Shown piece after piece: positions 15,960 through 41,391 of a stretch of 64,000 bases of DNA. Source of the stretch: Mobula hypostoma (lineage: Eukaryota); contig NC_086110.1 in the NCBI RefSeq assembly GCF_963921235.1, positions 372,001-436,000 on the forward strand. The letters are read 5' to 3'. The notes under the pieces are model-generated. The model was not told the DNA's origin, searched no databases, and worked only from the letters and a program-made list of their open reading frames with translations. Positions within the stretch are counted from its first letter, which is position 1. Every line of letters starts with the position of its first letter. A program made the position numbers and the translations under genes.

Positions 15960-16063
15960 TCAACCCTTGTAAGCAAAATAAATAATCAAAGCCCATACGT
16001 GAAATACAAGCGCAGCCAGGGAACCACGCACGATCCAATCAACGGCAATGGCAGCGAAGACAG
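15960..16063 (-). CDS. Probable terminal exon 4 of the Ig-superfamily receptor: transmembrane segment with Arg, minimal tail (AVFAAIAVDWIVRGSLAALVFHVWALIIYFAYKG*)
   Basis: Branch-like CTAAT plus TTCATTTCACAG acceptor; phase-1 entry matches the C1 exon donor; hydrophobic stretch then TGA; too short for the ORF track. Confidence 0.72.
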
Positions 16064-16507
16064 CTGTGAAATGAATATGATATCGGCATTAGGAAGTGAC
16101 ACAGAGAACGAACAAACACACGAGATCAGTTTCTATCGATAAAGTTGTTCTCTGATTATTTTAGGACCCGGCACAACCCTCCGCCCCGATCATTTTTTTT
16201 TTGTTTTATTCCTTTCTTTCACGATTTGGCGATCGTTCGAGAGACCAGCATTTAATTGCCTACCCTCCAGCTGCTCCGAGATGGAATACAGAAAGCAGGG
16301 TCACTTCGAATGTGGGAAATATTTCAATGAACGACTGAAGTATATTTTGTTAATGGTGTACACTGCAACCCAGTGGAGGACATACATGTTTTTGTTTAGG
16401 TTAGAAAATAAGTTGCCCCATCACCAAAGTCGCTTTTGGAATGTCGCAAGATTCAGGACCACTAAGAGTAAACTCACACTGTTAGTGAATGTGCAAATTG
16501 CATAAAC

Positions 16508-17207
16508 NNNNNNNNNNNNNNNNNNNNNNNNNNNNNNNNNNNNNNNNNNNNNNNNNNNNNNNNNNNNNNNNNNNNNNNNNNNNNNNNNNNNNNNNNNNNN
16601 NNNNNNNNNNNNNNNNNNNNNNNNNNNNNNNNNNNNNNNNNNNNNNNNNNNNNNNNNNNNNNNNNNNNNNNNNNNNNNNNNNNNNNNNNNNNNNNNNNNN
16701 NNNNNNNNNNNNNNNNNNNNNNNNNNNNNNNNNNNNNNNNNNNNNNNNNNNNNNNNNNNNNNNNNNNNNNNNNNNNNNNNNNNNNNNNNNNNNNNNNNNN
16801 NNNNNNNNNNNNNNNNNNNNNNNNNNNNNNNNNNNNNNNNNNNNNNNNNNNNNNNNNNNNNNNNNNNNNNNNNNNNNNNNNNNNNNNNNNNNNNNNNNNN
16901 NNNNNNNNNNNNNNNNNNNNNNNNNNNNNNNNNNNNNNNNNNNNNNNNNNNNNNNNNNNNNNNNNNNNNNNNNNNNNNNNNNNNNNNNNNNNNNNNNNNN
17001 NNNNNNNNNNNNNNNNNNNNNNNNNNNNNNNNNNNNNNNNNNNNNNNNNNNNNNNNNNNNNNNNNNNNNNNNNNNNNNNNNNNNNNNNNNNNNNNNNNNN
17101 NNNNNNNNNNNNNNNNNNNNNNNNNNNNNNNNNNNNNNNNNNNNNNNNNNNNNNNNNNNNNNNNNNNNNNNNNNNNNNNNNNNNNNNNNNNNNNNNNNNN
17201 NNNNNNN
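16508..17207. other. Assembly gap (700 N)
   Basis: Run of N; the poly-X ORFs are artefacts. Confidence 1.
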
Positions 17208-17549
17208 TAGAACATTGAATGTTAAGCTTGAACCACGAGTGGCTCCATGCCTGGTATTGAAAGGTAAGGATAGCTGGATCCCCTCTTGTTATCGTATGAC
17301 ACTTTTACAGCGCAAGTCCCTTATCACACCAGGGGATGTTGTTCAGTTCCAGCTGACTGCAGATGCTGAGGAAGCATAAATAGAGTTGAATATAATTTAA
17401 CTTCTTCAGTACGTCCTCTTCATACCGTGTGATGGAAGTGTGATCATTGGTGAAGCAGCTGCCAGAACACTGATGCGGCTCCTAACCTGCCCTGAGGAAC
17501 TTCTTCACTGATGTCATGGGGCTGGGATGATTGAGCTCCAAATCCCTCC

Positions 17550-18620
17550 AGGGAGGCTAACATTAAGATACATGGGGTCCACGGCAAATTGGCTGATTGG
17601 ATTCTGAACTAACTTGCGCAGTAACGATAGAGGGCAGTGGTTGAAGGGATTTTTTTTTCGAACTGGAGGTCTGTAAGAGTGGTGTTCCGCAGGGATCTGT
17701 GCTGGGGACTCTACGGTTTGTGATGTGTAGAAATGACGTGGATGGGTGGATGAATAAGTTTACAATGATACCAAGATTGGTAGAGTTGTGGATAGCGTCG
17801 GGGAGTGGCAAAGAACACAGCGTGTCATCGATCAGTTGCAGTTATAGGTAGATAAATGGTATCTTGGTAGGGCAATTGCAACGAGACAGTACATTGTAAA
17901 GGGAAAGATCCTTAACGGTGTTGCTGAGCAGAACGATCTTGGGGATCCAATTTTATAGCTCCGTGACAGTGGCCACACACGCCAGTACGGTGGTTAAGAA
18001 GGTTTATGGAATACCTCCTTTTATTAGTCGAGGTACTGAATTCAAAAGTCAAGAGATTATGTTGCAACTTCATGTAGCGAAGCCACACCTGGAGTATTTC
18101 ACGCAGTTCTGGTCACCCCAATATAGGAAGAATGTTGAGGCTTTGCAAGGGGGCAGAAGAGTTTTAGAGGGAATGTGCTATCACGAGAGGCTGGGCAACC
18201 TTGGTTGTTTTTTTTTGAGCGGCGGAGGCGGACTGGAGATCTGATAGAGGTTTGTAAGATAGAGGCATAGTAAGAGTTGACAGTAAGTATATTATTCCGA
18301 GGTAGAAACGTCTAATACCAGAGGTTATCCATTGAAGGTGAGAGGGGGTAGTTTCAAAGTGAATGTAAGTTGTAAGTTTTTTACTCAGAGAGTGGGGAAT
18401 TCTTGGAATGCGCTGCCAAGTATGATGGTTGAGTCACCTACATTAAAGGCTTTTAAGGGACGCTTAGAAAGGCATATGAACGCAATGAAGATGAACGGAT
18501 ATAGCATTGTGGAGGTAGGAGGAACCAGCTTATGGGTTTTTTTGATTTACTTTTTGGGGGTTCGGCACAACTCCGTGGGCCGAAAGGCCAGCTTCTCTGC
18601 TGTACTATGTTCTATTTACC
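17550..18620 (+). mobile_element. Degenerate CR1 3' half
   Basis: PHLEYFTQFWSPQYRK and FFTQRVGNSWNALP remnants. Confidence 0.8.
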
Positions 18621-18909
18621 TTGCGTAGTGCACCAAACGATTCTAGCCATTGGGGGACTTTCATCACTAGTCACAGATACCTCGCATGTGGAATTAGATA
18701 TTTTGACCCACGTTTATACAAATGCTACGTTAAGATCTGAATCAGAGACTTCTTGGCAAAACTAGGCACAACTGAGCAGGTCATTAGAGCGCAAGGACCA
18801 CTTGGTAACTCCATAAACGATACCTTTCATCATGTTGAGTAGTGCAATTTGGCTAAATTGTATTTGCAACATTTTATGTAAACAGGATAATCAAGATGTT
18901 CCACTTGCT

Positions 18910-20140
18910 ACATAGAACATAGAACATAGAATAGTACAGCACTGTAGAGGCCCTTCGGCCCACAATGTTGTGCCGACCCTCACCCCTGCCTCCCATATAA
19001 GCCCCCACCTTAGATTCCTCCATATACCTGTCTAGTAGTCTCTTAAACTTCACTAGTATATCTGCCTCCACCACTGACTCAGGCAGTGCATTCCACACAC
19101 CAACCACTCTCTGAGTAAAAAACCTTCCTCTAATATCCCCCTTGAACTTCCCACCCCTTACCTTAAAGCCAGGTCCTCTTGTATTGAGCAGTGGTGCCCT
19201 GGGGAAGAGGCGCTGGCTGTCCACTCTATCTATTCCTCTTATTATCTTGTACACCTCTATTATGTCTCCTCTCATCCTTCTTCTCTCCAAAGAGTAAAGC
19301 CCTAGCTCCCTTAATTTCTGATCATAATGCATACTTTCTAAACCAGGCAGCATCCTCGTAAATCTCCTCTGTACCCTTTCCAATGCTTCCACATCCTTCC
19401 TATAGTGAGGTGACCAGAACTGGACACAATACTCCAAGTGTGGCCTAACCAGAGTTTTATAGAGCTGCATCATTACATCGCGACTCTTAAACTCTATCCC
19501 TCAACTTCTGAAAGCTAACACCCCATAAGCTTTCTTAACTACCCTATCCACCTGTGAGGCAACTTTCAGGGATCTGTGGACATGTACCCCGAGATCTCTC
19601 TGCTCCTCCACACTACCAAGTATCCTGCCATTTATTTTGTACTCTGCCTTGGAGTTTGTCCTTCCAAAGTGTACCACCTCACACTTCTCCAGGTTGAACT
19701 CCATCTGCCACTTCTCAGCCCACTTTTGCATCCTATCAATGTCTCTCTGCAATCTTTGACAATCCTCTACACTATCTACAACACCACCAACCTTTGTGTC
19801 ATCTGCAAACTTGCCAACCCACCCTTCTACCCCCACATCCAGGTCATTAATAAAAATCACGAAAAGTAGAGGTGCCAGAACAGATCCTTGGAGGACACCA
19901 CTAATCACAATCCTCCAATCTGAATGTACTCCCTCCACCACCACCCTCTGCCTTCTGCAGGCAAGCCAATTCTGAATCCACCTGGCCAAACTTCCCTCGA
20001 TCCCATGCCTTCTAACTTTCTGAATAAGCCTACCGTGTGGAACCTTGTCAAATGCCTTAGTAAAATCCATATAGATCACATCCACTGCACTACCCTCATC
20101 TATATGTCTGGTCACCTCCTCAAAGAACTCTATCAGGCAA
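18910..20140 (-). mobile_element. Relatively young 5'-truncated CR1 with (CATAGAA)n tail
   Basis: ORFs 19501-20208 and 18874-19473 give near-continuous RT C-terminus; tail at ~18910-18930. Confidence 0.92.
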
Positions 20141-20519
20141 AACAAAATTCGGCCCAAATGGACAATTGTGACCAGTGGGCACTCTTCCATATTAATCACA
20201 TCGCACAAATGTTCCTAAGAGATTCAAGTGTTCACTTATATAAATATTTTCAGCAATGAGAAGTTTAAGGAGAACTTGAGGGGAAACCTTCATTCAGATG
20301 GCTGTGAGAGTGTGGAGCCACCTGCCAGCACAGGTGGTGCATGCAAGCTACATCTCAATGTTTAAGAAAAGTTTGGATAAGCACATAGATAGAAGGGGCA
20401 CAGAGGGCTATGAACCCAGTGCAGGTCAATAGGAGTAGGTGGTTTAAATGTTTCGTTACGGACTAGATAGGCCGAAGGGCCTGTTTCTGTTCTGTACTTT
20501 CTACATTTCTATGGTTCTA

Positions 20520-21050
20520 ATCCAGCTTCAAGAATCCTCTCTGGCCACAATTCTCTGGATGATGAAAGTGTCCCTCAAATTCCTTTTCTCTTGTCTGAAA
20601 CCCCTGTCTTCTGTGTCGGAAATCAATAAGTCACGTTCAATTCTATCTGCAATTTCTCAGCAAATAATTTGAATTCGCAGACACTGCTGGGTAAATGTTA
20701 TTGTTGTCACTGCATCAGAATGGTTTGACTAATGATGGATCTAGTTTTCCAGCGCAGGGCTTCAGTGTTACAGCTGGGATGTTATCTGACCTGAAGGTCT
20801 CTGTTTTATCCAGTATATTTCTTGACATTATGCAGAATGGATGGGATCAGCTAAAGACCGCAGCATCCGTCGAGGCAGGAGGGTTGGTCGATACTTTAGA
20901 TCAGGTTTCAACATTGGAATCTCTTTTGTCTCTGGCTGCTGACAAGCTTCAGTTATAATGGAAATCTTGGGGTGTAGCCTCGCCCAGCACTTATGACTGA
21001 GGTTGGGACCAAATGCCTCAGCGCTATTGTTAACACGCAGGGCTCTGCTA
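20520..21050 (-). mobile_element. Old CR1/L2-group LINE fragment of a different family
   Basis: Minus frame reads ...ILDKTETFRSDNIPAVTLKPCAGKLDPSLVKPF*, a decayed KAxGPDxIP..LKxCA RT N-terminal motif. Confidence 0.6.
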
Positions 21051-21289
21051 TTGATGTGGGTGGTATGAGATTGGAACTTCCTCTTTCTGTTGACTATTTA
21101 ATTGTCCAAACCCATTGAACCCTACATGTTACAAAAATGCAGACATGTGATCATCCCCGTGGTTGATTTAATCTCTTAAAATTACATATCCTGTCTTTCT
21201 TTGCTTTCTTGCACCTCTCCTTAAGTCTGTCTCTCTTAATTGTCCGAGTACAGCGCACAGTCCTACCAGTCCTACTTATGCATCTTGTC

Positions 21290-21535
21290 CCAGACCCGAC
21301 ACTTGGGTTTCCTCCATGTGCTCCGATTTCCTACATCCCAAAATATATGCGGTTAGTAGGCAACATGGCCAAGGTGAATTGCCCTCGTTTAGGCGAGTGG
21401 TTGAATCTGCGGGCAGTAGACGGGATGAATTATACGAGATTATTGTGGGATTAATATCAATGAGTGGATGGTGGCGAGCACCGACTTGACAGCGGAAGGG
21501 CCAGACTCTGTGCTTTACTTCTCTGTGACTCTGGC
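21290..21535 (+). mobile_element. V-SINE/HE1-like SINE, degenerate
   Basis: GGGTTTCCTCCATGTGCTCCGATTTCCT core; 3' end GAAGGGCC...TGTGCT like the CR1 tail. Confidence 0.7.
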
Positions 21536-21779
21536 GTCACGTTTGCAACATGAGTTCCAATTCTCTAAGATGGAACCATCACCGATTGAACATTCCACTC
21601 ATCACCTCAGCAGCGCACAGGTATCTGGTTATGGCTGCTGATTCTCGAGATGTTTATTGTAGACATTAGTGGGACTGGGTTGAAGGAGTTGAAGAAGCTC
21701 AGTGCTCCGGGGTTCCGTTGTTTTTTGACGTGATGGAGAAGAAGTGATTGAAAGAGGAGTGTCATTACTAGTCAGGGGA

Positions 21780-23780
21780 AATGTCCCAGTTGTGCTCAAA
21801 CTAGACAAACTGGAGAGCTCGTCTAAAGAGTCTGCATAGTGGAACTGAGGAATAAGAAAGGATTCATCATGTTAGCGTGGTTATATTATAGACAACTAAA
21901 TAGTCAGAAACATAAAATTGTGATAGAAGGTGACTTTTGTTTCACACATTTTGACTGCGACTGTCATACTGTCAGGGGACTGGATGGCATCGCGTTTGTC
22001 AAATGTGTTCAACTAGGGAGACTGCGATACTGGATATCCTATTAGGAAATGAGACAGGGTAAGTGGCAGATATGTGTGTAGCGGGACCCGCCGGATAGTG
22101 ATCATAGTTCCATTAGTTTTAAGATAATTATGGAGAAGGATATGTCTGGTCCTCGGATTCAGATTCTAAATTGGAGAAAGACCGACGTTCAAGGAATCGG
22201 AAGCGATATGGCACTGTCGATTGGGATAGGATGATTTATAGAAAAGATGTGCTTGGTAAGTGGGTGTCCTTCACATGTGAAATTTTGAGAATACAACGTT
22301 TATATGTTACTGTCAGAATATTAAGTAAGGGTACCACGTTTAGGTAACATTGGTTTTTGAGAGATATTGAAGCACTAATTCTGAAAAATAAGGAGGTGCA
22401 AAACAGGTATAGGCATCAAAGAACAGGTAAGGTACCTGGAGAATGTAAGAAATGGAAACAAACACTTACAGAATTCAAGAGGGTTAAAGGTAGACATGAA
22501 CTTGCTCTAGCAGAGAAAGTGAAGGCGAATCCCAAAGGATTCAACAGATATATTAAGAGCAAAAGGGTAGCAAGGGACAAAATTGGCCGTCTTGAAGATC
22601 AACGTTGCATTCTATGCATGGAGCCGCTTTAATGAAATTTTGCATCACTATTTACTCAGAAGATGGACTTGCAATCTATAGAACGGCATCATGGAAGGTA
22701 TAAGGGTTACAGAGGAGCAGGAGGAGGTGCTTGCTATCTTGAAGCAAATTATGGTGGATAATTCCCCAGGGCCAGACAAGGTGTTCCTTCGGATCTCCTG
22801 TGAGTCTAGTGCAGAAATTGCCGGGGACTTAGCCGAGGTATTTAAAAATCCTTAGGAGAATTGCTGGATAGCTAATACTGTTTCATTGTACAACATATCA
22901 TTTTAAAGCTGTCAGAATAAGCGGTGAAATTATGGGCCGATGAGCTTGACATCAGTAGTGGGAAGTTATTGGAAGGTATTGTAAGGTACCGGATATGTAA
23001 GTATTTCAATAGCCAGGGCCTGATTAGGGGATGTTACCATGGCTTTTGTACGTGAAAAGTCTTGTCTATCCAATTTTTTAGAGTTTTTCCGAGACTTTTA
23101 CCAGGTAGGTTGATGAAGAGAAATGTAGCGGATGTTGTCGTCATGGACTTTGACAAGATTCCTCATAGGACATTGCTCTAGTAAGTTCAATCGCTTGGCA
23201 TTCAGGATTAGGTGAAACTGGATTCACCATCGGCTTTGCGGGAGAAGCCAAAGAGTGTAGATTGTTACCTCCCTGACTGGAGGTCTGGGACTAGCGGGCT
23301 GCTGCAGGGATCGGTGCTGGGTCATTGTTTGTTTGTCATCTCTATCAACGTCCTGAATTAGAGTGTAGTAAACAGGGTCAATAAATTTGCTGATGACACC
23401 CAGATTAGGCTCGTGGTGAACAGCAAGAAGTTTATCCAAGGTTACAGCAGAATTTGGATCAGCTCAAAACATGTGCTGAAAATGGCAGCTAGAGTCTAAT
23501 GCAGACAATCATGAGGCTGGGAGGACAATCTCCTTGCTTTTACATTCTATCCACCGTGCGACTTAAACAGTGAAGACTACGGGACTGAGAAGTGAGGTAG
23601 AACAGAGGGTTCTGGGAATACAAATCCATTATTCCTTCAAAATTCTGACACAGATAGATAAGGTGGGAAAGAGAGCTTCTGGCACATTGGCCTTCATAAA
23701 TGAGAGTACAGAATACAGGAGTTGGGATGTTATGATAAAGTTATGTAAGCCGTTACTGAGGCCAAATATGGAACATTAAA
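21780..23780 (+). mobile_element. Degenerate CR1 ORF2
   Basis: VELRNKKG, KANPKGFNRYIKSKR and RT remnants in order. Confidence 0.8.
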
Positions 23781-25342
23781 ATTATAATACCATAAGATAT
23801 TGGAACAGAACTAGACCATTTGGCCCATCGAGTCTGTTCTAGTATTGCATCATGGGTGATTTATTACCCTCTCAACCCCAGTCTTCTGCTTTTTTCCCTA
23901 TTCCCATCATGCTTTGACTAATCAAGAATTTGTCAACCTGTGCCTTAAATATACCCAATGTCTCGGATACCACAGCCCCCTGTGGCAATGAATTCCAGAA
24001 ATACACCACTCCCTATCTGAATAAATTCTTTCACATCTTCGTTCTAGATAGGTGCACCTCTATACAAAGGTATTGTCCTATTGTGTTAGTATCCACCAAC
24101 ATAGAAAAGATCATCTCCACGTCCATTCTGTCAAGGCCTTTCAATTTTCGGTATGCTTCAATGAGATCCCCCCTCATACTATCTCTGTTGATCAGAGATA
24201 GTGTCATGGCTTTAGAAAAGGAGGAAGACCTGGAGGGGTTGCTGTCTACAGAGTCTCTGTGAGTGGAAGTTAGGAATAGGAAGGGTTCATAAACTCTACT
24301 GGGTGTTTTTTATAGACCACCCAATAGTAACAGGGACAGCGAGGAGCAAAGAGGGAGACAGATTCTGGAAAGCAGTAATAATAACAGGGTCGTGGCGCTG
24401 CGAGATCTGAATTTCCCAAGTATTGATTGGCTTCTCCCTAGAGTGAGAAGTTTAGATGGGGTGGAGTTTGTTAGGTGTGTTCAGGAAGGTTTCTTGGCAC
24501 AATATGTAGATAAACCTATAAAAGGAGAGGCTGTTTTTGATATGGTATTGGGAAATGAACCTGGTCAGGTGTCAGGTCCCTCAGTGGGAGAGCATTTTGG
24601 AGATAGTGATCATAATTCTATCTCCCTTACCATAGCATTGGAGGGGGATAGGAACAGACAATTCAGGGAACCGTTTAATTGGAGTAAGTGGAAATATGAG
24701 GCTATCAGGCAGGAACTTGCAAGCATAAGTTGGACACAGATGTTCTCAGGGAAACGTACGGAAGAAATGTGGAAAATGTTCGGGGGATATTTGCGTGGGG
24801 TTCTGCGCAGATTCGTTCCAATGGCACAGGGAAAGGATGGTCGAAGACAGCAACTGTGGTATACAAAGGCTGTCGTAAATCTAGTCAAGAAGAAAAGAAG
24901 AGCTTACAAAAGGTTCAAAATACTAGAAAATAATAGAGATCTAGAGGACTATATGGTGAGCAGGAAGGTGCTTAAGAAAGAAATTAGGAGAGCCAGAAGG
25001 GGTCATGAGAAGGCCTTGGCAGATAGGATTGAGAAAAACCCCAAGGCATTCTACAAGTATGTGAAGCGCAAGAGGAAGAGAGTGAGAGAATAGGACCAAT
25101 CAAATGTGACAGTGGAAAAGTGTGCATGGACCCGGAGGAGATAGCGGAGGTACTTAATAAAGACTTTGCTTCAGTATTCTCTATGGAAAAGGATCTTGGC
25201 GACTGTAGGGATGACTTGCAGCGGACTTAAAGATTGAGTATGTTGATATTAAGGAATAAGATGTGCTGGAGATTTTGGAAAAGGTCATGTTGTGTAAGTC
25301 ACCGGCTCCGGATGGAATGTACCCCAGGCTACTGTGGGAAAC

Positions 25343-25765
25343 ATAGTAACATAGAAACATAGAAAATAGGTGCAGGAGCAGGCCATTTGGCCCATCGAGA
25401 CTGCACCACCATTCAGTATGATCACGGCTGATCATCCAACTCAGAACCCTGCACCAGCCTTCCCTCCCTATCCCCTGATCCCTTTAGCCACAAGGGCCAT
25501 ATCTAACTCCCTCTTAAATATAGCCAATGAACTGGCCTCAACTGTTTCCTGTGGCAGAGAATTCCACAGATTCACCACTCTCTGTGTGAAGAAGTTTTTC
25601 TTAATCTCAGTCCTAAAAGGATTCCCCTTTATCCTCAAACTGTGACCCCTCGTTCTGGACTTCACCAACATCGGGAGTGATCTTCCTGCATCTAGCCTGT
25701 CCAATCCCTTTAGGATTTTATACGTTTCAATAAGATCCCCCCTCAATCTTCTAAATTCCAACGAA
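25343..25765 (-). mobile_element. Young CR1 3' fragment (~420 bp), nested
   Basis: ORF 25468-25761 EFRRLRGDLIETYKILKG...; CATAGAAA tail. Confidence 0.88.
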
Positions 25766-28859: not shown

Positions 28860-31800
28860 TAGTGAGTACAGTCCCAGATCCATCAAACGTCTGCTTATAT
28901 GATTAGCCTTTCAGTCCTGAATTGTCCGGAAACTTGACAATAAAGCCATCAATTCCTACATCAAACTTATTGACATGTAATGTAAAAAGAAGAGGTCCCA
29001 ACTCTCACTCCTATGGAACACCTTAGTCACCGGCAGCTGACCAAAAATTCTCCCTCCATAAGACCATAAGATCGGAAGACATAGTAGCAGAATTAGGCCA
29101 CTTAGCCCATCAAGTCTGCTCTGCCATTCCATTATGGCTGATCCCGGATCCCACTCAACCCATACACCTGCTTTCTCATCATATCCTTATTTCCCGCTCG
29201 ATCATGAATCGGTTAACATCTGCCTTAAATATATGCACGGACTTGGCCTCCACCGCAGTCTGTGGCATAGAATTCCAGAAATTTACTACTCTCTGGCAAA
29301 AACATCTTACCTCTGTTCTAAAGAGTTGCCACTAAATTTTGAAGTTTTGCCCTCTAGTTCTGGCTACCCCCACCACAGGAAACATCCTCTCAACATCCAC
29401 CCTATCTTGTCACTTCAATATTCGGTAGGTTTCAATGAGATTCCGTGCCTCCAACCACACCCCCCACCCCCAACCCCGCCGCCAACGTCCTTCTAAGTTC
29501 CAACGAGTACAGGCCCAAAGCTGCCAAACTCTTTTCATTTGTTTACCTCCTCATTCCTGGTATCCTCCTCGTGAATCTCCTCTGGACTCTCCCCAGTGAT
29601 AGCACATCTTTTCTGATTTATGCGGCCCAACACTATTGATAGTATTCTAAGTGTGGCCTGACCAGTGTCTTATAACGACACAGCATTCTCTCCTTGTTTT
29701 TATATTCTCTCCCCTTGAATTAACTGCTAACATTGCACTTGCCTTCACTACAGACTCAGCCTGTAAATTTAACCTGCTGGGAGTCTTGCATGAGGACTCC
29801 TAAGTCCCTCTGCACCTCTGATGTTTGAATCTTCTCCCCAATTAGATAACAGTCTGCACTATTGTTCCTTTAACCTAAATGTATTATAATACATTTTCCA
29901 ACACTGTATTCCATCTACCACTTTTTTTACCCGTTCTTCCAACTTGTCTAAGTCCTGTTGCAATTGCATTTCTTCCGCAGCACTACCAACACCTCCACAT
30001 ACCTTCGTATCATCCGCAAATTTGCCACAAAGCCATCAATTCCATTATACAAATCACCGACAAAAAATGTGAAAAGTAGTGGTTCCAATACTGACCCCTA
30101 AGGAACACCACTAGTCACCGACAGCAAACTAGAAAAGGCCCCCTTTATTCGCACATGCTGCCTCCTGCCTGTCAGCCATTCCTCTATCCATGCCAGTATC
30201 TTTCTTGTAACACCATAGGATTGTATCTTGTTAAGCAGCCTCACATGTGGCACCTTATCAAATGCCTTCTGAAAATCGAAGTAAATGACATCCATCGCCT
30301 CCCCTCCATCCACCCTGCTTGTTACTTCCTTGAAGAACTCTAACAGATTTGTCAGGCAAGATGTCCTTTGACAGAAACCATGCTGATTCTGACTTATTTT
30401 GTCATCAGTCTCTAAGTACCTTGAAACCTCATCCTTAACAACTGACACCAATACCTTCCCAACCACTGAGGTTAGGCTAACTGGCCTCTCTTTTTAAAGA
30501 GTGGAGTAAAATTTGCAACTAAGTCCTCCGGGACCATCCCAGAATCAAATGATTCTTGAAAAATCATGACCAATATATCCGTTATCTCTGTAGCAACCTC
30601 TCTCTGGACTCTGGGATGTAGTCTATCTGGCCCAGGTGACTTATCAACCTTAAGACCTTTGAGTTTGCCTAGTATTTGTTCCTCTGTAATAACAGAGGCA
30701 CTCATGAACTTCCTGGCACACTGCTTGTGTTTTCACAGTGAAGTCAGATACAACGTACCCATTCAGTTCACCAGCCATTTCTTTGTCCCCCATTACTACT
30801 TCACCAGCATCATCCTTCAGTCTTCCAACATCAACTCCCACCTTCTTTTTACTCTTTATATAACTGAAAAAAAAACACTTTTGGTATCCTTCCTAATATT
30901 ACTGGCTAGTCTGCCTTCATATTTCATTTTTCCTATTCTTATAGCTTTTATCCTTGACTTTTGTTGGATGTTAAAAGAATACCAATCATCCACTCACTTG
31001 TACTACATTATGTGCCCTTTTCTTGACTTTTATGCAGTACTTAATTTTCTTTGTCAGCCATGATTTCCTGCCCCTATTATTTGAGAACTTTTTCCTTTGT
31101 GCAACATATCTATCCTGGGCCTTGTGAAAAACCCCCAGGAACTGCAGCCATCGCTGCTCTGCCATTATTCCCACCAGCGGTCTCTTCCAATCCACCTGCG
31201 AAAGCTCCTCTCTCATGCCTCTGTAATTCGTTTTATTCCATTGCGATACAGATACTTAGGAGTTATATTTCTCCCTCTCCAATTGCAGTACAAAATCAAA
31301 CATATTATAATCACTGCTTCCTAAGGGTTCGTTCACGTTAAGCTCCCTAATAAGATCTAGGTTATTCCACAACACTCAGTCTGAGATAGTCTTTCCCCAA
31401 GTAGGCTCAAAGAGAAGCTGCTCTAAAAATCCATCTGGTACAGATTCAAGAATTTTCCTTTCTTGCGATCCAAGACCTACCTGATATTCCCAATCCCCTT
31501 GCATATTAAAGTCCCCCATTATTATTGTGCTATTACCCTTGTTTCATGCCTTTTCAACTCCCTTTACAATCTCAGCACCATATCTTTACTACTATTCCGA
31601 GGCGGTATATGATTCCCCTAGTGATTTTTACCCTTGCAATTTCGTAACTCCACCCACAAAGATCTAATATTCTCTGACCCTATGTCACTCCTTTCTAAAG
31701 ATATAATTTCATATCTTACCAACAGAGCTACATCACCGTCTATGCCTTCCTGCCTGTCCTTTTGATACAAAACATATCTTTCATTGCTAAGCTCCCAACC

Positions 31801-33500
31801 GTGGCCTTCCTTCATCCTCGGCTCAGTAATGTCCACAATGTCATTCAGACCAATCTCAAATACGCCACAGACTCGTCCACTTTTTTCCCACTCTTTGCTT
31901 CCTGCCAATCAGCCAATGCTTTATCCATGCTAATATCTTTTCTGTAATTCTATGGGTTCCTAATTTTTGTTAATCACCCTCATGTGTAGCACCTTGACAA
32001 AGGCCTTCTGAAAAGCCAAGTATACAGCATGCAAAGATTCTCCTTTGTCTATCCTGCTGTTATTTCTTCAAGGAATCCAGATAGATGCGTCATGCAAGAT
32101 TTTCCCTTGAGGAAACCATGCTGACTGCGGCTAATGTTATCATGTGCCTCCATGTACCCTGGAAGCACACCCTCAAAAAATGGACTCCAGCATCCATTCA
32201 GCCACTGAGGTCAGACTAACTGGCGTGTAATTTCCTTTCTTCTGCTTCTTTTCCTTATTGAAGTGTGGAGCGGCATTTGTAATTTTTCAGTCCTCTGGAA
32301 TTATTCCAGAATCCATTGATTCTTGAAATATCATTAGAAAAACCTCTACAATCTTTTTGGGCATCTCCTTCTGAGAGCAGGAGTGTACATCAGCTGGCCC
32401 AGGTAACCTATCTAACTTCTGACCATTCAGTTACACAAACACCTTCTCCCCTGTATTGGCAACTTCACTCACGTCTTCCCCTAAGAAACTTCCAGCACAC
32501 TGCTGGTGTCTTCCCCAGAGAATAATGATACAAAATATGTGTCTAGTTCGTCCACTATTTTCTCGACCCCATTACTACCTCTTCAGGGATTTTTTTTCCA
32601 AGTGGTCCAATATCTACCCTCACCTCTCTTTTGCATACTTATGTCTAAGGAAACCTTTGTATCTGCTTTCATATTGTTGGCTAGCTTACACTCATATACC
32701 ATCCTTTCTTTCTTTATTACTTCTTTGGTTGCATTCTGTTGGTATTTAAAAGATTTCCAATCCTCTAATGTTCCACTAAATGTTGTTGTATTATACGCCC
32801 TCTTTTTGGCATATATATTGGCTTTGACTTCTCTTGTCAGCCTCATTTGTGTCATCCTGCCTTTAGAATACTTCTTTGATGGGATGTAGCTATCCTGCCC
32901 CTTATGATTTGCTCCTAGGTACTCTAGCCATTGCTGCTGTACTGTCACCTCTGCTTCTGTTCCCTTCCAATCAGTTTTGGTTAGCTCCTCTCTCATGTTT
33001 CTGTAATTATTTTTACTCCACTGTAATAGGAATATATTAGAATATGAGGACACTCAGTCCTCATTTATTGTTATTTAGAAATGCATGCATGCACTAAGAA
33101 ATAATATATCTGGCTTCAGCTTCTCCTTCTCACAGTTCCTTTACCTTAACCACTCTGATCAATTTGTCGTACAACACTCAATCTAGAATAGCTGATGCCG
33201 GGTGGGCTCAAACACGAGCAGCTCTAAAAAGCCATTGCATAGGCATTCTACAACACCCCTTCCCTCCCCGTGATCCACTACCAATTTCAATATGCAGGTA
33301 GATCTTTCCAATCGACCTGCATATTGAAATACCTCATGACTATTGCAATATTGTTTTTTTTATAAAATGTATTTTCTCTCTCCCTCTGTAATTTGTAGAT
33401 CAAATTCTTGCTACTGATTGGGTTTATGTATGTAATTCCCATCAGAGTGGTTTTATTTTTGTAGTTTCTTAGCTCGACCCTTCTGATTCTACACCTTCTG
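28860..33500 (-). mobile_element. Composite of several degenerate CR1 copies
   Basis: Minus-strand ORFs 30098-30466, 30472-30705, 30986-31216, 31618-31908 and 32583-33053 are CR1 ORF2 pieces. Confidence 0.85.
33037..33102 (-). mobile_element. ~66-bp LINE 3'-end insertion with AATATA TSD inside CR1
   Basis: Same sequence as 50594-50660; AATATA at 33031-33036 and 33103-33108. Confidence 0.7.
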
Positions 33501-33519
33501 ATCCAAGTTACATGAAACT

Positions 33520-35130
33520 AGAATTTCAATAGCATTGGAGTGAGATAGGAACAGACAAGTTAGAAAAGCATTTAGGTGAAGTGAAGGGTGAAGGGAATTA
33601 TGGGTCTATTAGGCAGGGACTTGCAATCATAAACTGGGAACAGATATTCTCAGGGAAAGGTACGGAAGAAATGTGCCGAATTTTCAGGGGATATTTGTGT
33701 GGAGTTCTGCATAGGCACGTTCCAATGATACAGGGAGGTTACGGTAGGGTATAGGAAATATGGTGTACAAAGGCTGCAGTAAATCTAGTCAAAAAGAAAA
33801 GAAAAGCTTTTGAAAGGTTAAGAGAGCTAGGTAATGTTAGAGATCTAGAACATTCTAATGCTAACACGAAGGAGCTTAAGAAGGAAATTAGCAGAGCCAG
33901 AAGGGACGATGAAAAGGCCTTGGTGGGCAGGAGTAAAGAAAACTCCAAGGAATTCTACAAGTATGTGAAGAGCAAGAGGATAAGACATGAAAGAATACGA
34001 ACTATCAAATGTGACGGTGAGAAAGTGCGTATGGAACCGGAGGAAATAGCAGAGGTACTTAATGAATACTTTACTACAGTATTCACTATGGAAAGGGTTC
34101 TTGGTGATTGTAGGCATGACTTGCAGTGGACTGAAATGCCTGAGCATGTAGATATTAAGAAAGAGGATGTGCTGGAGCTTTTGGAAAGCATCAAGTCGAA
34201 TAAGTCGATGGGACCGGATGAGACGTACGCCAGGCTATGGTGGGAGGTGCAGGAGGAGATTGCTGGGACTCCAGCAATCATCTTTGCATCATCAATGGGG
34301 ACGGGAGAGGTTCCGGAGGATTGGAGGGTTGCCAATGTTGTTCCCTTATTCAAGAAAGGGACTTGGGATAGTCCAGGACATTATAGACCAGTGAATCTTA
34401 CTTCAGTGGTTGGTAAATTGATGGAGAAGATACTAAGAAGCAGGATTTATGAACATTTGGAGAGGTAGAATATGATTAGGAATAGTCAGTACGACTTTTT
34501 CAAGGGCAGGTCATGCTTTACGAGCCTGATAGAATTTTTTGAGGATGTGACTAAACGCATTGATGAAGGTAAAGCAGTAGATGTAGTATATATGGATTTC
34601 AGCAAGGCATTTGATAAGGTACCCCATGCAAGGATTATTGAGAAAGTAAGGAGGCATGGGATCCAAGGGGACATTGCTTTATGGCTCCACAACTGGCTTG
34701 CCCACAGAAGGCAAAGAGTGGTTGTGGACCAGTCGCATTCTGTATGGAGGTCAGTGACCAGTGGTGTGCCTCAGGGATCTGTTCTGGGACCCTTACTCTT
34801 CGTGATTTTTATAAATGACCTGGATGATGATGATGAGGGATGGGTTAGTAAGTTTGTTGATGACACAAAAGTTGGGGGTGTTGCGGATAGTGTGGAAGGC
34901 TGTCAGAGGTTACAGCGGGACATTGATAGGATGCAAAACTGGGCTGAGAAGTGGCAGATGGAGTTCAACCCAGATAAGTGTGAAGTGGTTCATTTTGGGA
35001 GGTCAAATATGATGGCAGAATATAGTATTAATGGTAAGACTCTTGGCGGTGTGGATGACCAGAGGGATCTTGGGGTCCGAGTCCATAGTACGCTCAAAGT
35101 AACTGTGCAGGTTGACTCTGTGGTTAACAA
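33520..35130 (+). mobile_element. CR1 ORF2 fragment
   Basis: ORFs 33920-34468 and 34472-35197. Confidence 0.9.
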
Positions 35131-35269
35131 GACAGAAGATATGGAGGATGCTGTGCTGGATACTGAGTGTTATTGGGCAATAGATTATGGGCAATGAGAA
35201 TTACCCTAGAGTACAGACAGGACGATTGGATCTGAGTCGATGTACGGTGAAGGGAGCAGATATTCCTTG

Positions 35270-35980
35270 TCCATTTATCCTTCCCCATTCATTTCTCTCG
35301 TGACATCCATTCCTGCAAGCATTACAAGTGCTACGCCTGCCACTACACGTCCAAATCAGACCTTCCAGGTGAGATGACGCTTAATCTGTGGTGAGACCCG
35401 CCACAGATTGGGGGACCAATTGTTGAGCACCTTCGATACATCCAATGCAAGAAGTAGGATCTCCTGCTGGCTTCTTATTTCAATTGGACTTCTGGTTTAT
35501 ATTCTGATATCTCTGAACCGCCTTGTACTGCAATGATGAGGTCATGTCAGGTTGGAGACGCAACACCTCACATTTCATCTAGATAGCCTCCAACTTGATG
35601 ACATAAATATCGATTTTTCTAACCTGCTAATTTCTCCCCCTCTCTTTCATTCTTCCTTGTCTATTCCCCATTCTGTTTTCCCTCTCATCCCTTCACCTTA
35701 CCTGCCCACTGTCTCCCTATAGCACCCCTTCCCTTCTTCCAAGGTTCACTATCCACTCCTGTTAGATTCCATCTTCTTCAACCGTTTGCTTCTTCCACCT
35801 TTCACATCTCAGGTTCTTACCCACCCACCTTCGCTCTCACCTAGTCTCAACCATCATCTGCCAGCTTACAACAGGCCCCCACCACCGGCCCATCAATTTT
35901 CCTATGCTGGCTTATGCCCTCTTCTTGTCGACTCCCAATGAAAGGTCTCTATTTATTCGAAATGTCGTCTGTTTATAACC
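35270..35980 (+). mobile_element. Degenerate Penelope-like element 3' part
   Basis: Similar to 10140-10860 (CAGACCTTCCAGGTGAG, GATTGGGGGACC...GAGCACCT, decayed hammerhead at ~35930-35970). Confidence 0.75.
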
Positions 35981-35989
35981 CTCCGCATA

Positions 35990-38900
35990 GAACATAGAAC
36001 AGCACAGCACAGGACAGGCCATTCGGCCCGCAGTGTTTTACCGAACCAGATAAAAGAGCTAATCCAAAACAACCTATCACTTATCCCTCCTACCCACATT
36101 ATGACCTTATCCCTTCATCTTCCCTATAACCACGTGCCTATCCAAACACTTCTTAAACGCCTCTAAAGTATTTGCCTCTACCAGCACACCAAGCAGTGCA
36201 TTCCAGGAATCCTACCACTCTCAGAGTAAAAATAAATTACCCTCAGATCCCTTGAATCTACCCGCTCTCACGTTCAATGCATGCCCACTGGTATTAGACA
36301 TTTGATTACTTGAAAGCAGATATACTCTGTCCACTCTATCTATGCTTCTCATAACCTTGTAAATCTCTGGCAGATTTCCCCTCAGCCTCTGACGCTCTAG
36401 AGAAGAAAAAACAAGTTTACCAGCCTCCCGTGATAGCACTTGCCCTCTAAACGAGGCTGAATTCTGCTAAAGCTTTAATACCCCGTCTCCAAAGTCTCGA
36501 CATCCTTCCGATAGTGGGACTGTACGAAATGCAGGCCTAACCATAGTTTTATAAAGTTGCAACATAACCTCCTGATTTTTGAACTCAGTGTTTCAACTAA
36601 TAAGGGCAAGCATCCCATTAGCCTTCCTAACTACCGTATCGACCTGCGTAGCTTATTTAAAGGAGCTATGAACTTGGATCCTAAGATCTCTCAGTTCAGC
36701 AGCACTTTTAAGGATCTTGCCCTTAACAGTGTGCTGTTTCCTTGCATTTGCTCCTCTGAAGTGCAGCACCTCACAATAATCTGGGTTAAACTCCATCTGC
36801 CATTTATCCGCCCATATCTGCCACTGATAAAAATCGGGCTGAATTCATTGCCGGTTTTCTACACTATCTACAACTCCAGCAACCTTGGTATCATCAGCAA
36901 ATTTATTAACCCACCCATGTACACTTTTATCCATATCTAGGTTATTTATATACATCATAAACAGCAGATGTCCCAGTACAGTTTCCTGCAGAATTTCTCT
37001 AATTGCAGACCTTCAGATCGAATATGTCCCTTCTATGCACAAGCCAGTTCGGAATCCAAACAACCATGTCGCCATGGACCCTATGTTGCTTCATAAACTT
37101 CGGGATTAGCCTTCCATCTGGGACTGTCAAATATCTCACCAAAATCCATGTAGACAACATCAACTGTCCTATCCTCACTAATCTCTCTCGTCACCTTGGC
37201 ACGAAACTCAGTCAAGTTGGTAATCATGACTTGACATGCAAATAGCAATGCTGCCTCTCCCTAATTAGGCCACGGGGTTCCAAATGCTCATATCCTAACT
37301 GTAAGAATTTTCTCCAGCAATTTCCCTACATCTGATGTGAGACTCACCAGTCTATAGCTTGCAGGATTTTTCCCTGTTTCCTTCTTCAATTGAGGTACAA
37401 CATTAGCCATTCGCCAGTCATCTGGAGCCCCTCTTGTGGCTAGAGAGGACACAACGATACTGGGCAAGGGCTCAGTAATCTTCTCTCTTGCCCCCTTCAA
37501 TAACCTTGGGACAAATCCCAGTATGCTCGGGAAACTTTAATGCTCATAAGGAGGCCCAACACTCCCTCTTCCTCAACCACCAAAACCCCTAACTTATCAG
37601 TCAGCTAACTGATCTCCTGGTCCTCTATATCCTTTTCCTTGGTAAATTCTGAAACAAAGTACTCATTAAGTACCTCACTCGCACTCCCTGCATCCAAACA
37701 AGTGTTCCCCGTTTTATCGTAGAGTGGTCCAACCCTCTCTACAATTATTCTCTTTGTCTTGATGTATGCACAGAATGACTTGGGATTTATCTTAATCCTA
37801 CTTCCCACAACCTTTTCATGGCTTATTCTGGCTTTCTTAATTCCGTTCTTCAGTTCTTTTTTAGTTTCTTTAGACAATTCATGTTCTTTGTTTAATTCTA
37901 ACTTCCGAAGATTTACATATTTTTCCATTTTCCTCATGACTAAAATCACCACCTCTTTGAACATCCAAGGTTCTCTTATCTTTCCATCCCCGTCATTCCT
38001 TCGAACAGAAACATCCCTTTCTTGTACTCTATGCAATTGATCTTTAAACTCCATCTGTGTCTGATGTGACATGCACATCAAAGAAAAGGTGGTCCCAATT
38101 AATGCTTTTTAGATCCTGCCTAATGCCCTCATAATCTTCCCTACTCCAATTTATAATTCTCCCACAAGGACCATACCTATCCTTATCTGTAGCTATCCTG
38201 AAAGTTAAGGAGTTGACGTCACTGTTTCCTGACTGTTCACCCACTGAAAGGTCAGTCACCTGACCAGACTCATTAGCCAACACCAGGTCCAGTCATTCCC
38301 CTTCTCTCGTTGGACCATCCACATACTGATTCAATAAATCTTCTCGGATACACTTAACAAATTCATCCTTATCTAAACCCCTTGCACTCAGAAGTTTCCA
38401 GCTTATATTAGGGAAGTTGAAATCCACCATGACAAGAATCCTATTATTTTTGCACATTTCCTTATCTGATTACATAATTTTCCCGGTGGCAATTATGGGG
38501 TCTGTAATACAACCCGGCCTGTGTAATTGCACCCTTCCAGTTTGTGAGTTCCACGCAAATGGACTCAGTGTCTCAGTCATCCATTACGTCTTCACGTGAT
38601 TGCAGTTGTGATATTGTCCCTGATCAGTAGTGCAACTCAGCCCTCCCTCTTTTACCTCCTCTGATGTCTTTTCTAATACTTCGAAAACTTGATACATTAG
38701 TCATCCATCCCTGCCCCTCTCTCAACTAAGTTTCAATGATCCACACTCATCACTCTTACCCATAATAGTCATAGCGTTAAAATACTTCCTATCATTCATA
38801 CCTGTTATTTCCATTTTTCCCCTCTCAGTACTTTCCCTGACAACTTTCTTCTGGTCTGATCCTTCCCTTACTGACCAGGAGCTCTGGTTCACTGCCCTCT

Positions 38901-39410
38901 ACAAAACTAGCTAAACTCATCTGAGTAGCAAGAGTGAACCACCTGGCTAGGATGTTGGTTCCCTTCCAGTTCAGGGGAAACCCGTCCATTTTGCACGTCA
39001 CCCCTTCCCCAGATAAGGTTCCAATCCATAGATTGCAACTTCAAATGTCTTTCTCTTCAGCCTACTTCCTAACTCTATATACTTACTGCCTAGGACCTCT
39101 TTCTCTTTTCTGCCTATGCCATTGGTACCAATATGTGTAATGCCATCTAGCTGTTCTTGCACCCACTCCAATACATCATGGAGCATAGCACCCAGGAGAC
39201 AGCACAGCATCCTGCTCTTTTTACTGCCAAAGAATCTCCTTTCTGTTCCCATAACTATCGAATCCCCTATAACTACCACACTGTTTTACTTTGCCCTTCC
39301 CTGTCGAGCTTCAGATCCGCCCACAGTGCCACCAGCCTGGCAGCTGCTGCCGTGATCTCATGGGTCACCCCCTCTCCCCAACTCAGCAGTATCCAAAGAG
39401 GTATACTTTT
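35990..39410 (-). mobile_element. Near full-length degenerate CR1 (ORF1 esterase-like remnant plus ORF2 plus tail)
   Basis: ORF 38998-39279 VVIGDSIV...HIGTNGIGR; ORF2 remnants; CATAGAA tail at ~35987. Confidence 0.85.
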
Positions 39411-39612
39411 TTTTTTGCTCTGGGAAATACTGCACACGATCTTCGACGCTGAGTTCCTTCAGCAGTTTGTGCGCATGACTGATGGAAAGATGCCTCCTGG
39501 CCACTGGGAGCGGGACTAACCTAAGCAACCGGCTGCTTGAAAAATGGCTTACATATGCCTGAAACATTTTAACGTATTTCCATCAATTAAAATGTCCACT
39601 GTAAGGCATTAC

Positions 39613-39918
39613 CTTCTTTAGAAACCGTGAAGTTGGCAGTTGCTGGAACTGATGTCGAAATATGGTGAACTTGACATGCATAAACCGTGCCTTTCTTGAC
39701 TGGCTGTGACTCTTCCAAAGAGCTGATAACTTCATATAAACCCCCTGCAGTTGGATATTGTTCATGTTTGATTCCATGCTGGACCTCTGTACCATTTTTA
39801 TGCCAGGTGAGGTTAAATTCTTTTGGATAAAAAGCAGCTGTTCTGCATTGGAGTATCAGGAAAGCAGATGAAGATTTTGCCGATCGCATAGATACAATCT
39901 TCAGAGGAGAGGGAACAG
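39613..39918 (-). CDS. Exon 3 of the Ig-superfamily receptor: C1-set Ig domain
   Basis: TTTTCCCCTTCTTTCAG acceptor, G|GTAATG donor; 306 nt, phase 1-1; LQCRTAAFYPKEFNLTWHKNG...YACQVHH are canonical C1 motifs. Confidence 0.95.
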
Positions 39919-40244
39919 CTGAAAGAAGGGGAAAATTAAAATAAAACAAAACCCTTTTCGTTTTGAAATTTTCTAATCAATTAGCACATGGTTGGATGCA
40001 TAACAGGTCTATAATAAACTGTAAATTGTGAACCAATTTAAAGCTGTTTTGCACTATAATTATGTAACCTTCCCTCATATTTCCCTATATATATTTAATA
40101 ACCTGGATTCCGTTTGCGGATTGTTTCTGCTGGTGCTAAAGCGTCCGAATGATACAGTTTCCAGCAATTTTTGAGCAGAGAACTGTTGTTACGTCAAGAA
40201 CAACTCTCGTCCCAACATCATCGATTTCCAGACATTGACTTGAC

Positions 40245-40420
40245 AAGGCACAACACAGACACATTGCTGGAGGAACTCAGCAGACCATGGAAGAGAGTAC
40301 AGTCGAAGTTTCATGCCGAGACCGTTCATCTCTTTTCCATAGATGCTGCCTGGCCTATTGAGTTCCTTCACCATTTTTTGTGCTGCTTTCGTTTCTAGCA
40401 TCTGCAGATTCTCTCTTGTT
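40245..40420. mobile_element. Penelope terminal-repeat fragments in inverted arrangement in the V-C1 intron
   Basis: Antisense copy 40250-40330 abuts a sense copy TCTTTTCCATAGATGCTGCCTGGCC... Confidence 0.7.
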
Positions 40421-40805
40421 TGTGTCTAACAACGGTGGTGGTTTTGTCTTTTCCGCAAATTATAGAGTTTTAATTCGGTTAGAGAATTAATCTGATGTGG
40501 ATTAGGTTTAACTATTTAAATTACAGGGATTAGCGACCCGTGTCCTAGCCTCGTTGTTCAGTTTTCAAATTGAAGGCGCGATTTAATTGGCAGCCGTACG
40601 TTCACTATCCGTAACATAGCTCACATCAAATATCGTAGATGATATTACCTTCTGTCAGCATTTGTTAGTCTCCTGCATTTACGAGCAAATTCTTCTCAAA
40701 TCAAATTGCAATGTTTTACACAACTCTACTCTGCATTCTTTGTGAAGCAAAATTCGAGTCTGGATCATAACTTAAGACCTCGGTTATAATTGTAACTCCG
40801 CTCAC

Positions 40806-41105
40806 CATGTACGACAACCTGCTGTCCTCGTCCCCTTTCGATGGTTTGTTCCGCGTGTTTCACGGCGCAATAATACGTTCCGGCGTCCGAGACCGTGACA
40901 TTCAGGAGGTGAAGGTAGGCGCCTCCTGGCTTTATGCTGATCAATTTTCTGCTATCTTCCTTTATAAAAGTCTTATTTTCACCTCTCCACCAGTAAACTC
41001 TGAGATTTGACTGATTAAGATCGAAGCGGAAGGAGCATCGGCAAGTAAAGTTTGTACCGCTGAGGATTATATTCGGAAAAGTATCCGGAGCTCTCTTGCC
41101 AGCAT
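40806..41105 (-). CDS. Exon 2 of the Ig-superfamily receptor: V-set (VJ-type) domain
   Basis: TTTATTGACAG acceptor, G|GTGAG donor; 300 nt, phase 1-1; CSF...VYWWR...LLNVTVSDAGTYYC...GRGQQVVV. Confidence 0.95.
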
Positions 41106-41336
41106 CTGTCAATAAACGATGCACACTCGGATTTAGTCATTGGTAGGATTTTTTTTTTAACAACTGACCGCGATACTCAAAATTCGAATAGCACAAATAT
41201 TATTCTGTGGCCGTTTCACCATCCTCACTGAGGTCTGGTAAATCACAGAATAAAAATAACTATCTCATCAACACTATATCGCATGTGGGGTTTGGTAAAG
41301 AACATTAACTAAGGAATAATAGAAATTACTGTATAC

Positions 41337-41391
41337 CCGCATTCACAATGGCAAGTAAATAGATGGTCCAAAATGACCGCTTCAGAAACAT
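41337..41391 (-). CDS. Exon 1 of the Ig-superfamily receptor: signal peptide MFLKRSFWTIYLLAIVNA
   Basis: ATG, basic residues then hydrophobic core; 55 nt ending in a phase-1 donor (G|GTATAC, weak), 231 nt upstream of the V exon. Confidence 0.75.

Follow-up and report, generated by a model that had tools for sequence, protein, structure and literature searches.

The gene considered here lies on the minus strand at positions 15960-41391 of a 64,000-nucleotide stretch of the genome of the lesser devil ray Mobula hypostoma (assembly GCF_963921235.1, contig NC_086110.1, positions 372,001 to 436,000 of the forward strand), which is referred to as the window and in whose coordinates all positions are given. 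It encodes a type I membrane glycoprotein made up of a leader, a V/I-type immunoglobulin (Ig) domain, a C1-set Ig domain, an arginine-containing transmembrane segment and essentially no tail. Exon 1 (41337..41391, 55 nt) holds the start codon, an 18-amino-acid hydrophobic leader and one further nucleotide before a phase-1 GT donor; the leader exon is also 55 nt long in Pristis, and the leader is 72-94% identical in orthologues. Exon 2 (40806..41105, 300 nt) encodes the short V/I-type domain with Cys40-x-Cys42, Trp58 and Tyr-Tyr-Cys98, and includes the G strand RGRGQQVVV (residues 109-117, 40810..40836), which is J-like and germline-joined. Exon 3 (39613..39918, 306 nt) encodes the C1-set domain, with Cys143, Trp157, Cys200 and His204, and exon 4 (15960..16063, 104 nt including the TGA) a short stalk, the transmembrane helix and a tail of 2-3 residues. 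The internal exons are each preceded by AG and followed by GT, and all introns are in phase 1. The spliced coding sequence of 765 nt yields 254 amino acids and a stop, with no stop or frameshift among the 254 codons, and seven N-x-S/T sequons (N37, 49, 62, 87, 154, 160 and 214). An earlier note on this DNA, made from the sequence alone, had proposed exactly this arrangement of four minus-strand, phase-1 exons (55+300+306+104 nt), and translation together with inspection of the splice sites reproduced it in full. The spliced product is identical in 254/254 residues (BLASTP) to P0157, a M. hypostoma protein in NCBI and UniRef, whose gene span in GCA_963921235.1 is 25,432 bp, equal to that of 15960-41391. 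The locus is a real, intact four-exon gene for which an automated gene model already exists, under the NCBI name ‘natural cytotoxicity triggering receptor 3 ligand 1-like’.

Contrary to the remark in the earlier note that no orthologue could be named, orthologues are found in other rays and in sharks. The devil-ray protein is 80% identical to P0156 of Hemitrygon akajei and 65.5% identical to P0155 of Pristis pectinata, transmembrane segment included, and shows 48-53% identity to shark co-orthologues from Heptranchias, Heterodontus, Scyliorhinus and Chiloscyllium. The gene plan is conserved with the protein: the Pristis pectinata locus (L001) has exons of 55, 312, 306 and 98 nt and, after these, two short exons for the tail, and the Heptranchias perlo locus (L002) has the identical four-exon leader/V/C1/TM plan. 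Exon 4 of the devil ray has homologues in the transmembrane exons of both, that of Pristis being 98 nt long and 50-55% identical. In Pristis a donor follows exon 4 (AAG/GTATGA), and the homologous position in Mobula reads AAGGGTTGA; here the coding sequence ends AAG GGT TGA (15960..15968), with GG where Pristis has the GT of the donor, and the protein ends KG-stop. Because this GT donor has been lost, the two Pristis tail exons could not be spliced on at the homologous Mobula site. Comparison of the coding exons with Pristis, the sole comparator, by the method of Nei and Gojobori (NG86) gave a ratio of non-synonymous to synonymous substitution (dN/dS) of 0.38 overall, with 0.47 for the V, 0.26 for the C1 and 0.46 for the transmembrane exon, which indicates purifying selection of a strength that is common among immune receptors.

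The two extracellular exons match Ig-domain families of different kinds. Exon 2 matches the Pfam V-set at 1.2e-7, with further matches to Ig_3, ig, Ig_2 and I-set, and exon 3 matches the C1-set at 7.5e-12, as the earlier note had assigned it. AlphaFold (AF2) models built from the family alignment reached a predicted local distance difference test score (pLDDT) of 90.0 for the V-C1 unit and 87.6 for the V domain alone. In the model of domain 1, C' is reduced to a bridge of one residue and C'' is absent, the other strands being A, B, C, D, E, F and G; the spacing from C42 to C98 is 55 residues. Its fold neighbours are mixed, namely I-set domains (titin, neuregulin, myomesin), BTLA, the V domain of IgNAR, T-cell receptor (TCR) V-alpha, the PD-L1 V domain and NKp44, all at E values of about 1e-6; I-set proteins are among its top matches both by sequence and by fold. 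The most fitting label for domain 1, from these matches and the model, is a short domain of V/I type whose G strand is J-like. Searches of the PDB with single sequences or profiles were not used for classification, as they are dominated by multi-domain chains such as titin, contactin and antibody heavy chains and give no fair ranking of single domains. An extra cysteine lies two residues before the B-strand cysteine (TCRC, C40-R41-C42, 41033-41041 on the minus strand) in Mobula, Hemitrygon and Pristis, and shark members of the family have F/L-R/K/Q-C at this position.

The V-type domain and the J-like strand share one exon, unlike the separate V and J segments of rearranging genes. The recombination signal sequence heptamer CACAGTG is absent in or beside the V exon, and its nine occurrences across the window, against 8.9 expected, are at chance level. 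The proposal that exon 2 encodes a non-rearranging, VJ-type domain is borne out on both counts. The consensus of the strand in the wider family is NGTGxxLxV; the Mobula version keeps the G-x-G bulge, and its remainder has degenerated.

Arg233 (codon 16026..16028, minus strand) is the fourth residue of the transmembrane core, within a conserved motif (L/W)I(Y/V)R(S/G), and is the sole charged transmembrane residue conserved across the short-tailed, activating-type members of the family. It is conserved in short-tail members of Mobula, Hemitrygon, Pristis, Heptranchias, Scyliorhinus and Chiloscyllium, and members whose tails carry immunoreceptor tyrosine-based inhibitory motifs (ITIMs) have Gly or Ala in the same column. 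Of the two other polar residues in the helix, Asp229 is common to Mobula and Hemitrygon alone, and His242 occurs in Mobula alone. A conserved charged signature that included Asp229 and His242 was rejected, as neither is conserved outside Mobula and Hemitrygon. A basic transmembrane residue in a protein without a signalling tail is the hallmark of receptors that couple to adaptors bearing immunoreceptor tyrosine-based activation motifs (ITAMs), such as NKp30, NKp46, Fc-alpha-RI, SIRP-beta and KIR-S; receptors of this kind are unable to signal by themselves, and their basic residue pairs with the transmembrane aspartate of the adaptor. The devil-ray protein has the features of this adaptor-coupled class, that is, a basic residue in the transmembrane helix, its conservation in orthologues and no signalling tail, and the arginine transmembrane segment with almost no tail was correctly recognised from the outset.

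This protein belongs to a larger group of chondrichthyan proteins with the same architecture. When the C1 exon was used as a phmmer query against 1.84 billion representatives (E <= 0.001), 554 proteins were matched, many of them proteins of 210-410 amino acids that combine a single V-type with a single C1 domain and are 40-61% identical. Among the top 150 of the 554, every single-C1 protein scores at least 66 bits on the family C1 profile, and the full-length ones are all V-C1-TM. Members come from the genera Mobula, Hemitrygon, Hypanus, Pristis, Heptranchias, Heterodontus, Scyliorhinus, Chiloscyllium, Stegostoma, Rhincodon, Cetorhinus, Mustelus, Hemiscyllium and Callorhinchus; since the last of these, represented by the chimaera Callorhinchus milii, has a member, the V(J)-C1-TM family is chondrichthyan-wide. 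In an alignment of 32 members the Ig residues of both domains are invariant, and domain 1 ends in the J-like consensus given above.

Three classes can be told apart by the transmembrane segment and tail. The first, which includes the devil-ray gene, has the (L/W)I(Y/V)R(S/G) motif and a short tail; the second has an uncharged, LIAGCAGG-like transmembrane segment and tails of ~80-190 amino acids with 2-4 ITIM-like motifs; the third has a ‘WWIY’ transmembrane segment and tails of 75-108 amino acids that contain no ITIM. The ‘WWIY’ class is represented by P0051, P0113, P0079 and P0177-P0182, in which the transmembrane segment starts WWIY(I/V)C(I/V)GSG, and forms two well-supported clades. In a maximum-likelihood tree of 55 family ectodomains, the Mobula, Hemitrygon and Pristis sequences form a clade with 100/100 support, nested in a further 100/100 clade of 13 that contains shark members of both the Arg and the ITIM type. 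The two forms interleave on the ectodomain tree, where the Arg label needs at least nine changes and signalling type has consequently switched repeatedly, and ITIM-tailed members have ectodomains near-identical to those of activating-type members. Such interleaving of Arg and ITIM forms reads as the signature of a paired activating/inhibitory receptor family.

The genomic arrangement of the family is clustered. Within each species its members sit on one chromosome-size contig, and in Heptranchias perlo three of them lie within about 300 kb of CM068652.1 (5.48, 5.51 and 5.76 Mb). In this cluster (L002/L003/L004, 5.47-5.78 Mb), two Arg-type co-orthologues are 25 kb apart in identical orientation, and a long-tailed member with ITIM-like motifs lies ~260-280 kb off on the opposite strand. 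Automated names within the family are inconsistent and include SIRP-alpha-, SIRP-beta-, SIRP-gamma-, NCR3LG1-, tapasin-related-, Ig-lambda-, TCR-beta-, MHC-II- and CDON-like. Mislabelling of this sort had been predicted, and the prediction is borne out by the names NCR3LG1-like for the devil-ray protein and SIRP-alpha-like for its orthologues. The literature searched yielded no paper on a SIRP-like family of chondrichthyans, and within it the V(J)-C1-TM family appears to be undescribed.

Outside cartilaginous fish, SIRPs are among the closest named sequences. The named non-chondrichthyan phmmer matches include SIRPs of lungfish, turtle and lizard, alongside unnamed Ig-like proteins of coelacanth, caecilian and frogs, a lungfish protein resembling the alpha chain of class II of the major histocompatibility complex (MHC) and a catfish MHC-I model. 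A search with the family profile found rodent SIRP-alpha as its first non-chondrichthyan match (1.1e-30), followed by a frog protein and teleost NITR13, and the language-model neighbours of P0157 include a cluster named ‘SIRBL protein’ (SIRP-beta-like; 0.95) and tapasin-related clusters (0.94). In a tree of 54 C1 domains, whose comparators came from the query's own match list and included no Ig, TCR, B7-H6, tapasin or NKp30 domain, the family C1 domains are monophyletic (100/99) and fall inside a 96/92 group with the C1 domains of rodent, turtle, lizard and lungfish SIRPs. Excluded from this group are the alpha-3 domain of catfish MHC-I, one MHC-II-like domain from lungfish and the majority of the C domains in two M. 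hypostoma multi-C1 proteins, P0170 (1623 amino acids with 12 C1 stretches, named ‘titin-like’) and P0172 (986 amino acids, named ‘immunoglobulin mu heavy chain-like’), which are probably misnamed genes of the UrIg/UrIg2 type. On these comparisons it is the SIRPs, and not TCR chains, that would be the nearest named kin of the devil-ray gene. The gene is no orphan, and the earlier description of it as lineage-specific does not stand, as its subfamily is shared with sharks (100/100) and the wider family reaches the chimaera. Of the related idea of a single TCR-chain-like ectodomain, the V-J-C1 layout is present; likeness to a TCR chain in particular is too narrow a description, since the V/I domain is short and the C1 domain groups with SIRP in the tree above. 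The further idea in the earlier note, of a receptor of the kind proposed as a precursor of rearranging ones, is held as conjecture.

Taking these results together, we consider it probable that the devil-ray gene is a functional, single-copy, activating and adaptor-coupled receptor of SIRP-beta-like type with a single C1 domain, the batoid member of a chondrichthyan paired receptor family whose closest named relatives are the SIRPs. A number of observations pull the other way. The devil-ray protein has one C1 domain and SIRPs have two. The C1 tree took its comparators from the match list of the query, and in per-domain profile scores SIRP C1 domains, at 46-54 bits, stand level with catfish MHC-I alpha-3 at 50 bits; with the domain 1 profile, SIRP d1 scores only 15 bits and the membrane-proximal domain of NITR13 41 bits. 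Searches with the predicted fold do not discriminate family membership. No inhibitory partner of the devil-ray subfamily was found in batoids, in a search of limited sensitivity. In Mobula and Hemitrygon, Asp229 precedes Arg233 by one turn of the transmembrane helix and could neutralise it, weakening adaptor pairing. Lastly, we infer the splicing and expression of the devil-ray gene from the NCBI model and from conservation.

If the gene is such a receptor, its mode of action can be sketched by analogy. The glycosylated two-domain ectodomain would bind a ligand; with no signalling tail of its own, the protein would pair through Arg233 with an acidic transmembrane residue of an ITAM adaptor of the FcR-gamma/CD3-zeta or DAP12 type, and the adaptor would relay an activating signal in the manner of SIRP-beta or NKp30, which ITIM-bearing relatives may oppose. 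Partners of the FcR-gamma/CD3-zeta type more typically go with an arginine near the outer leaflet than DAP12 does, and SIRP-beta pairs with DAP12 via a lysine. The expression, ligand, adaptor coupling and activating function that this scheme supposes for the devil-ray protein are in each case putative.

The presence of a VJ-type exon with a G-x-G bulge next to a C1 domain also invites the reading that the gene is a relic of the antigen-receptor lineage, i.e. a non-rearranging V-J-C1 chain nearer to Ig/TCR or to UrIg/UrIg2 than to SIRP. UrIg2 (9dmx) is the second PDB sequence match of the C1 exon (2e-11) and the second fold match, TCR V-alpha and the IgNAR V domain are among the fold neighbours of domain 1, and one of the Atlas neighbours of the V exon carries the name ‘putative Antigen receptor (Fragment)’. 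Set against this, most of the Mobula multi-C1 domains, the probable UrIg/UrIg2 kin, fall outside the 96/92 family-SIRP group, and the proteins that contain them, P0170 and P0172, are encoded on a different chromosome-size contig of 135.9 Mb, the family of the devil-ray gene being on one of 80.6 Mb. Paired ITIM and charged-transmembrane forms are a usual feature of innate paired receptors but not of Ig, TCR or UrIg, and the stalk of the batoid proteins lacks a cysteine through which chains could pair, a residue that some shark members possess. An antigen-receptor relic is weakened by these points, as judged with trees that contained no real Ig/TCR C or V sequences, and we regard it as unlikely.

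A second alternative is suggested by the NCBI name itself, namely that the gene is the ray orthologue of B7-H6 (NCR3LG1) and encodes a ligand of NKp30 instead of a receptor. B7-H6 likewise combines a V and a C1 domain in its ectodomain, and in rigid-body comparison it is the best fold match of the two-domain model (6yjp_E, TM-score 0.71, 24% identity; also Q5RFR2 and Q68D85). The next matches, however, are CD276, PD-L1, TAPBPL, BTN3A, SIRP-alpha and SIRP-beta at E values of ~1e-13 to 1e-10, the identity to CD276, PD-L1, TAPBPL and SIRP being comparable to that to B7-H6, and because many V-C modules give near-equal E values the fold does not decide the family. By sequence, the C1 domain of B7-H6 scores 36 bits (5.7e-8), below those of MHC-I, MHC-II, Ig and UrIg2, and names within the family, which extend to SIRP-, tapasin-related-, Ig-lambda- and MHC-II-like, are arbitrary best matches. 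The V domains of B7 proteins are not known to have a J-like G strand, which the family has as NGTGxxLxV. The uncharged transmembrane segment and long cytoplasmic tail of the ligand type are likewise missing from the devil-ray protein, in which Arg233 and a tail of 2-3 residues are found, and a charged, tail-less transmembrane segment in a family with ITIM-tailed paralogues indicates a receptor. Orthology with B7-H6 is accordingly held to be decidedly unlikely, and the SIRP-beta-like receptor is retained as the preferred interpretation.

The size of the gene is largely due to intron 3 (16064..39612, minus strand), which is 23.5 kb long, dense in reverse-transcriptase fragments of long interspersed nuclear elements (LINEs) and interrupted by an assembly gap of 700 N (16508..17207), the only N run in the window. 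LINE-type reverse-transcriptase open reading frame fragments occur on both strands between 17900 and 39300 (e.g. 26001-27446 on the plus and 19501-20208 on the minus strand), with matches to RVT_1 at 3.3e-34 and 1.9e-21. In Pristis the orthologous intron measures only 3.5 kb and in Heptranchias 2.4 kb, from which it follows that the Mobula intron has been enlarged about 7- to 10-fold through insertion of transposable elements of the LINE type. The gap lies 445 bp upstream of the transmembrane exon in gene orientation, and it breaks no exon and no reading frame.

It might be supposed that the true transcript uses an exon hidden among these 700 unread bases, so close to exon 4, which would encode an extra Ig domain or another transmembrane segment, and that the distal transmembrane exon is foreign to the gene. 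The transmembrane exon is, however, homologous to those of Pristis and Heptranchias, where it directly follows the C1 exon in gap-free loci, and because these orthologous loci pass from C1 to transmembrane exon without an intervening exon the gap need not hold coding sequence. The phases on either side match (1/1), the protein alignment is colinear over the C1/TM junction with no residues missing there, and the NCBI model uses the identical transmembrane exon. A hidden exon of this kind is therefore highly improbable.

The enlargement of intron 3 bears on a further alternative, that the reading frame is intact but the gene silent or decaying, a member stranded in a locus swollen by transposable elements with its tail exons lost. 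The growth of the intron from about 3 kb to 23.5 kb by LINE insertions would suit such a history, as would the degenerated J-like motif and the disappearance of the Pristis-type donor after exon 4. Yet all 254 codons are open, every splice site is canonical, and the canonical Ig residues and five sequons matching the family consensus have all been kept. The dN/dS values, overall and in C1 especially, and the 80% identity with Hemitrygon, which extends to the transmembrane motif, also argue against decay, and short tails are normal in the Arg-transmembrane class. Silence or decay is consequently judged improbable, in favour of a functional receptor gene.

No further Ig-like exon was found in the window by tblastn, nor is there one in the gap-free orthologous genes, and there are no neighbour genes inside the window, nor within 10 kb of the orthologues. 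The other long open reading frames of the window are mostly LINE-type reverse-transcriptase fragments; one on the minus strand at 60121-60894, in the transposable-element-rich region upstream of the gene, encodes 257 amino acids without a Pfam match. At 15660-15767 (minus strand), ~200 bp past the stop codon, lies a block with homology to the alternative last exon that Hemitrygon uses in isoform X2 (58% at the protein level, E 4.6e-7). It contains an in-frame stop in Mobula and was for this reason not accepted as a coding exon; it is probably a conserved 3' untranslated region or the remnant of an alternative exon.

The devil-ray gene itself is ordinary and already annotated, and it is the family as a whole that merits curation, since a curated description would correct its inconsistent annotation. 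For comparative immunology the family is a candidate natural killer (NK)/myeloid receptor system in the oldest jawed vertebrates, and it adds a data point to the question of which non-rearranging V-C1 genes stand nearest to the ancestor of antigen receptors. A more far-reaching proposal, which we put forward as doubtful, is that the family is the chondrichthyan counterpart of the NK/myeloid paired systems (KIR/LILR/NITR/SIRP), or a sister lineage of SIRP that has kept an ancestral single-chain V-J-C1-TM layout, which is also that of one Ig/TCR chain. If this were true, it would provide a living model of a non-rearranging receptor ancestral both to SIRPs and to rearranging antigen-receptor chains, of which the devil-ray gene would be a conserved activating member more than 250 million years old.

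Few innate paired receptor families are known from cartilaginous fish, among them NKp30 and the skate MDIRs. The devil-ray protein has in common with NKp30/NCR3 a first domain that is germline VJ-type and I-like, and a transmembrane arginine with a short tail; NKp30 differs in having no C1 domain. The NITRs are likewise multigene, with inhibitory (ITIM) and activating (charged-transmembrane) members and J-like motifs, and the membrane-proximal domain of NITR13 shares a ...GNGT... G strand with domain 1 of the family; in contrast, NITRs have V and I-type domains with no C1-set domain and are known only from bony fish. Compared with Ig and TCR chains, whose full V-set domains have ~65-75 residues between the cysteines and both C' and C'' strands, the devil-ray domain has 55 residues and no C''.

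UrIg and UrIg2 resemble the devil-ray gene in being elasmobranch, non-rearranging and in having one VJ exon with C1-type domains after it. They have three to eleven C domains, where the devil-ray protein has a single C1, and paired ITIM and charged-transmembrane forms are not described for them in those sections of the source drawn on here (PMC12227049).

The closest parallel is provided by the SIRPs, which are also non-rearranging, begin at the N-terminus with a V-type domain whose G strand is J-like, continue with C1-set domains and occur as multigene clusters of ITIM-tailed and charged, tail-less paired members, among which the devil-ray gene would correspond to the beta type. Apart from the number of C1 domains, the family differs from them in its short, V/I-type domain 1 without a C'' strand and in its transmembrane residue, an arginine near the outer leaflet. 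Because a SIRP in the strict sense has two C1 domains and the devil-ray protein one, the gene falls outside that definition and is filed as a variant of the paired SIRP-like receptors of the Ig superfamily.

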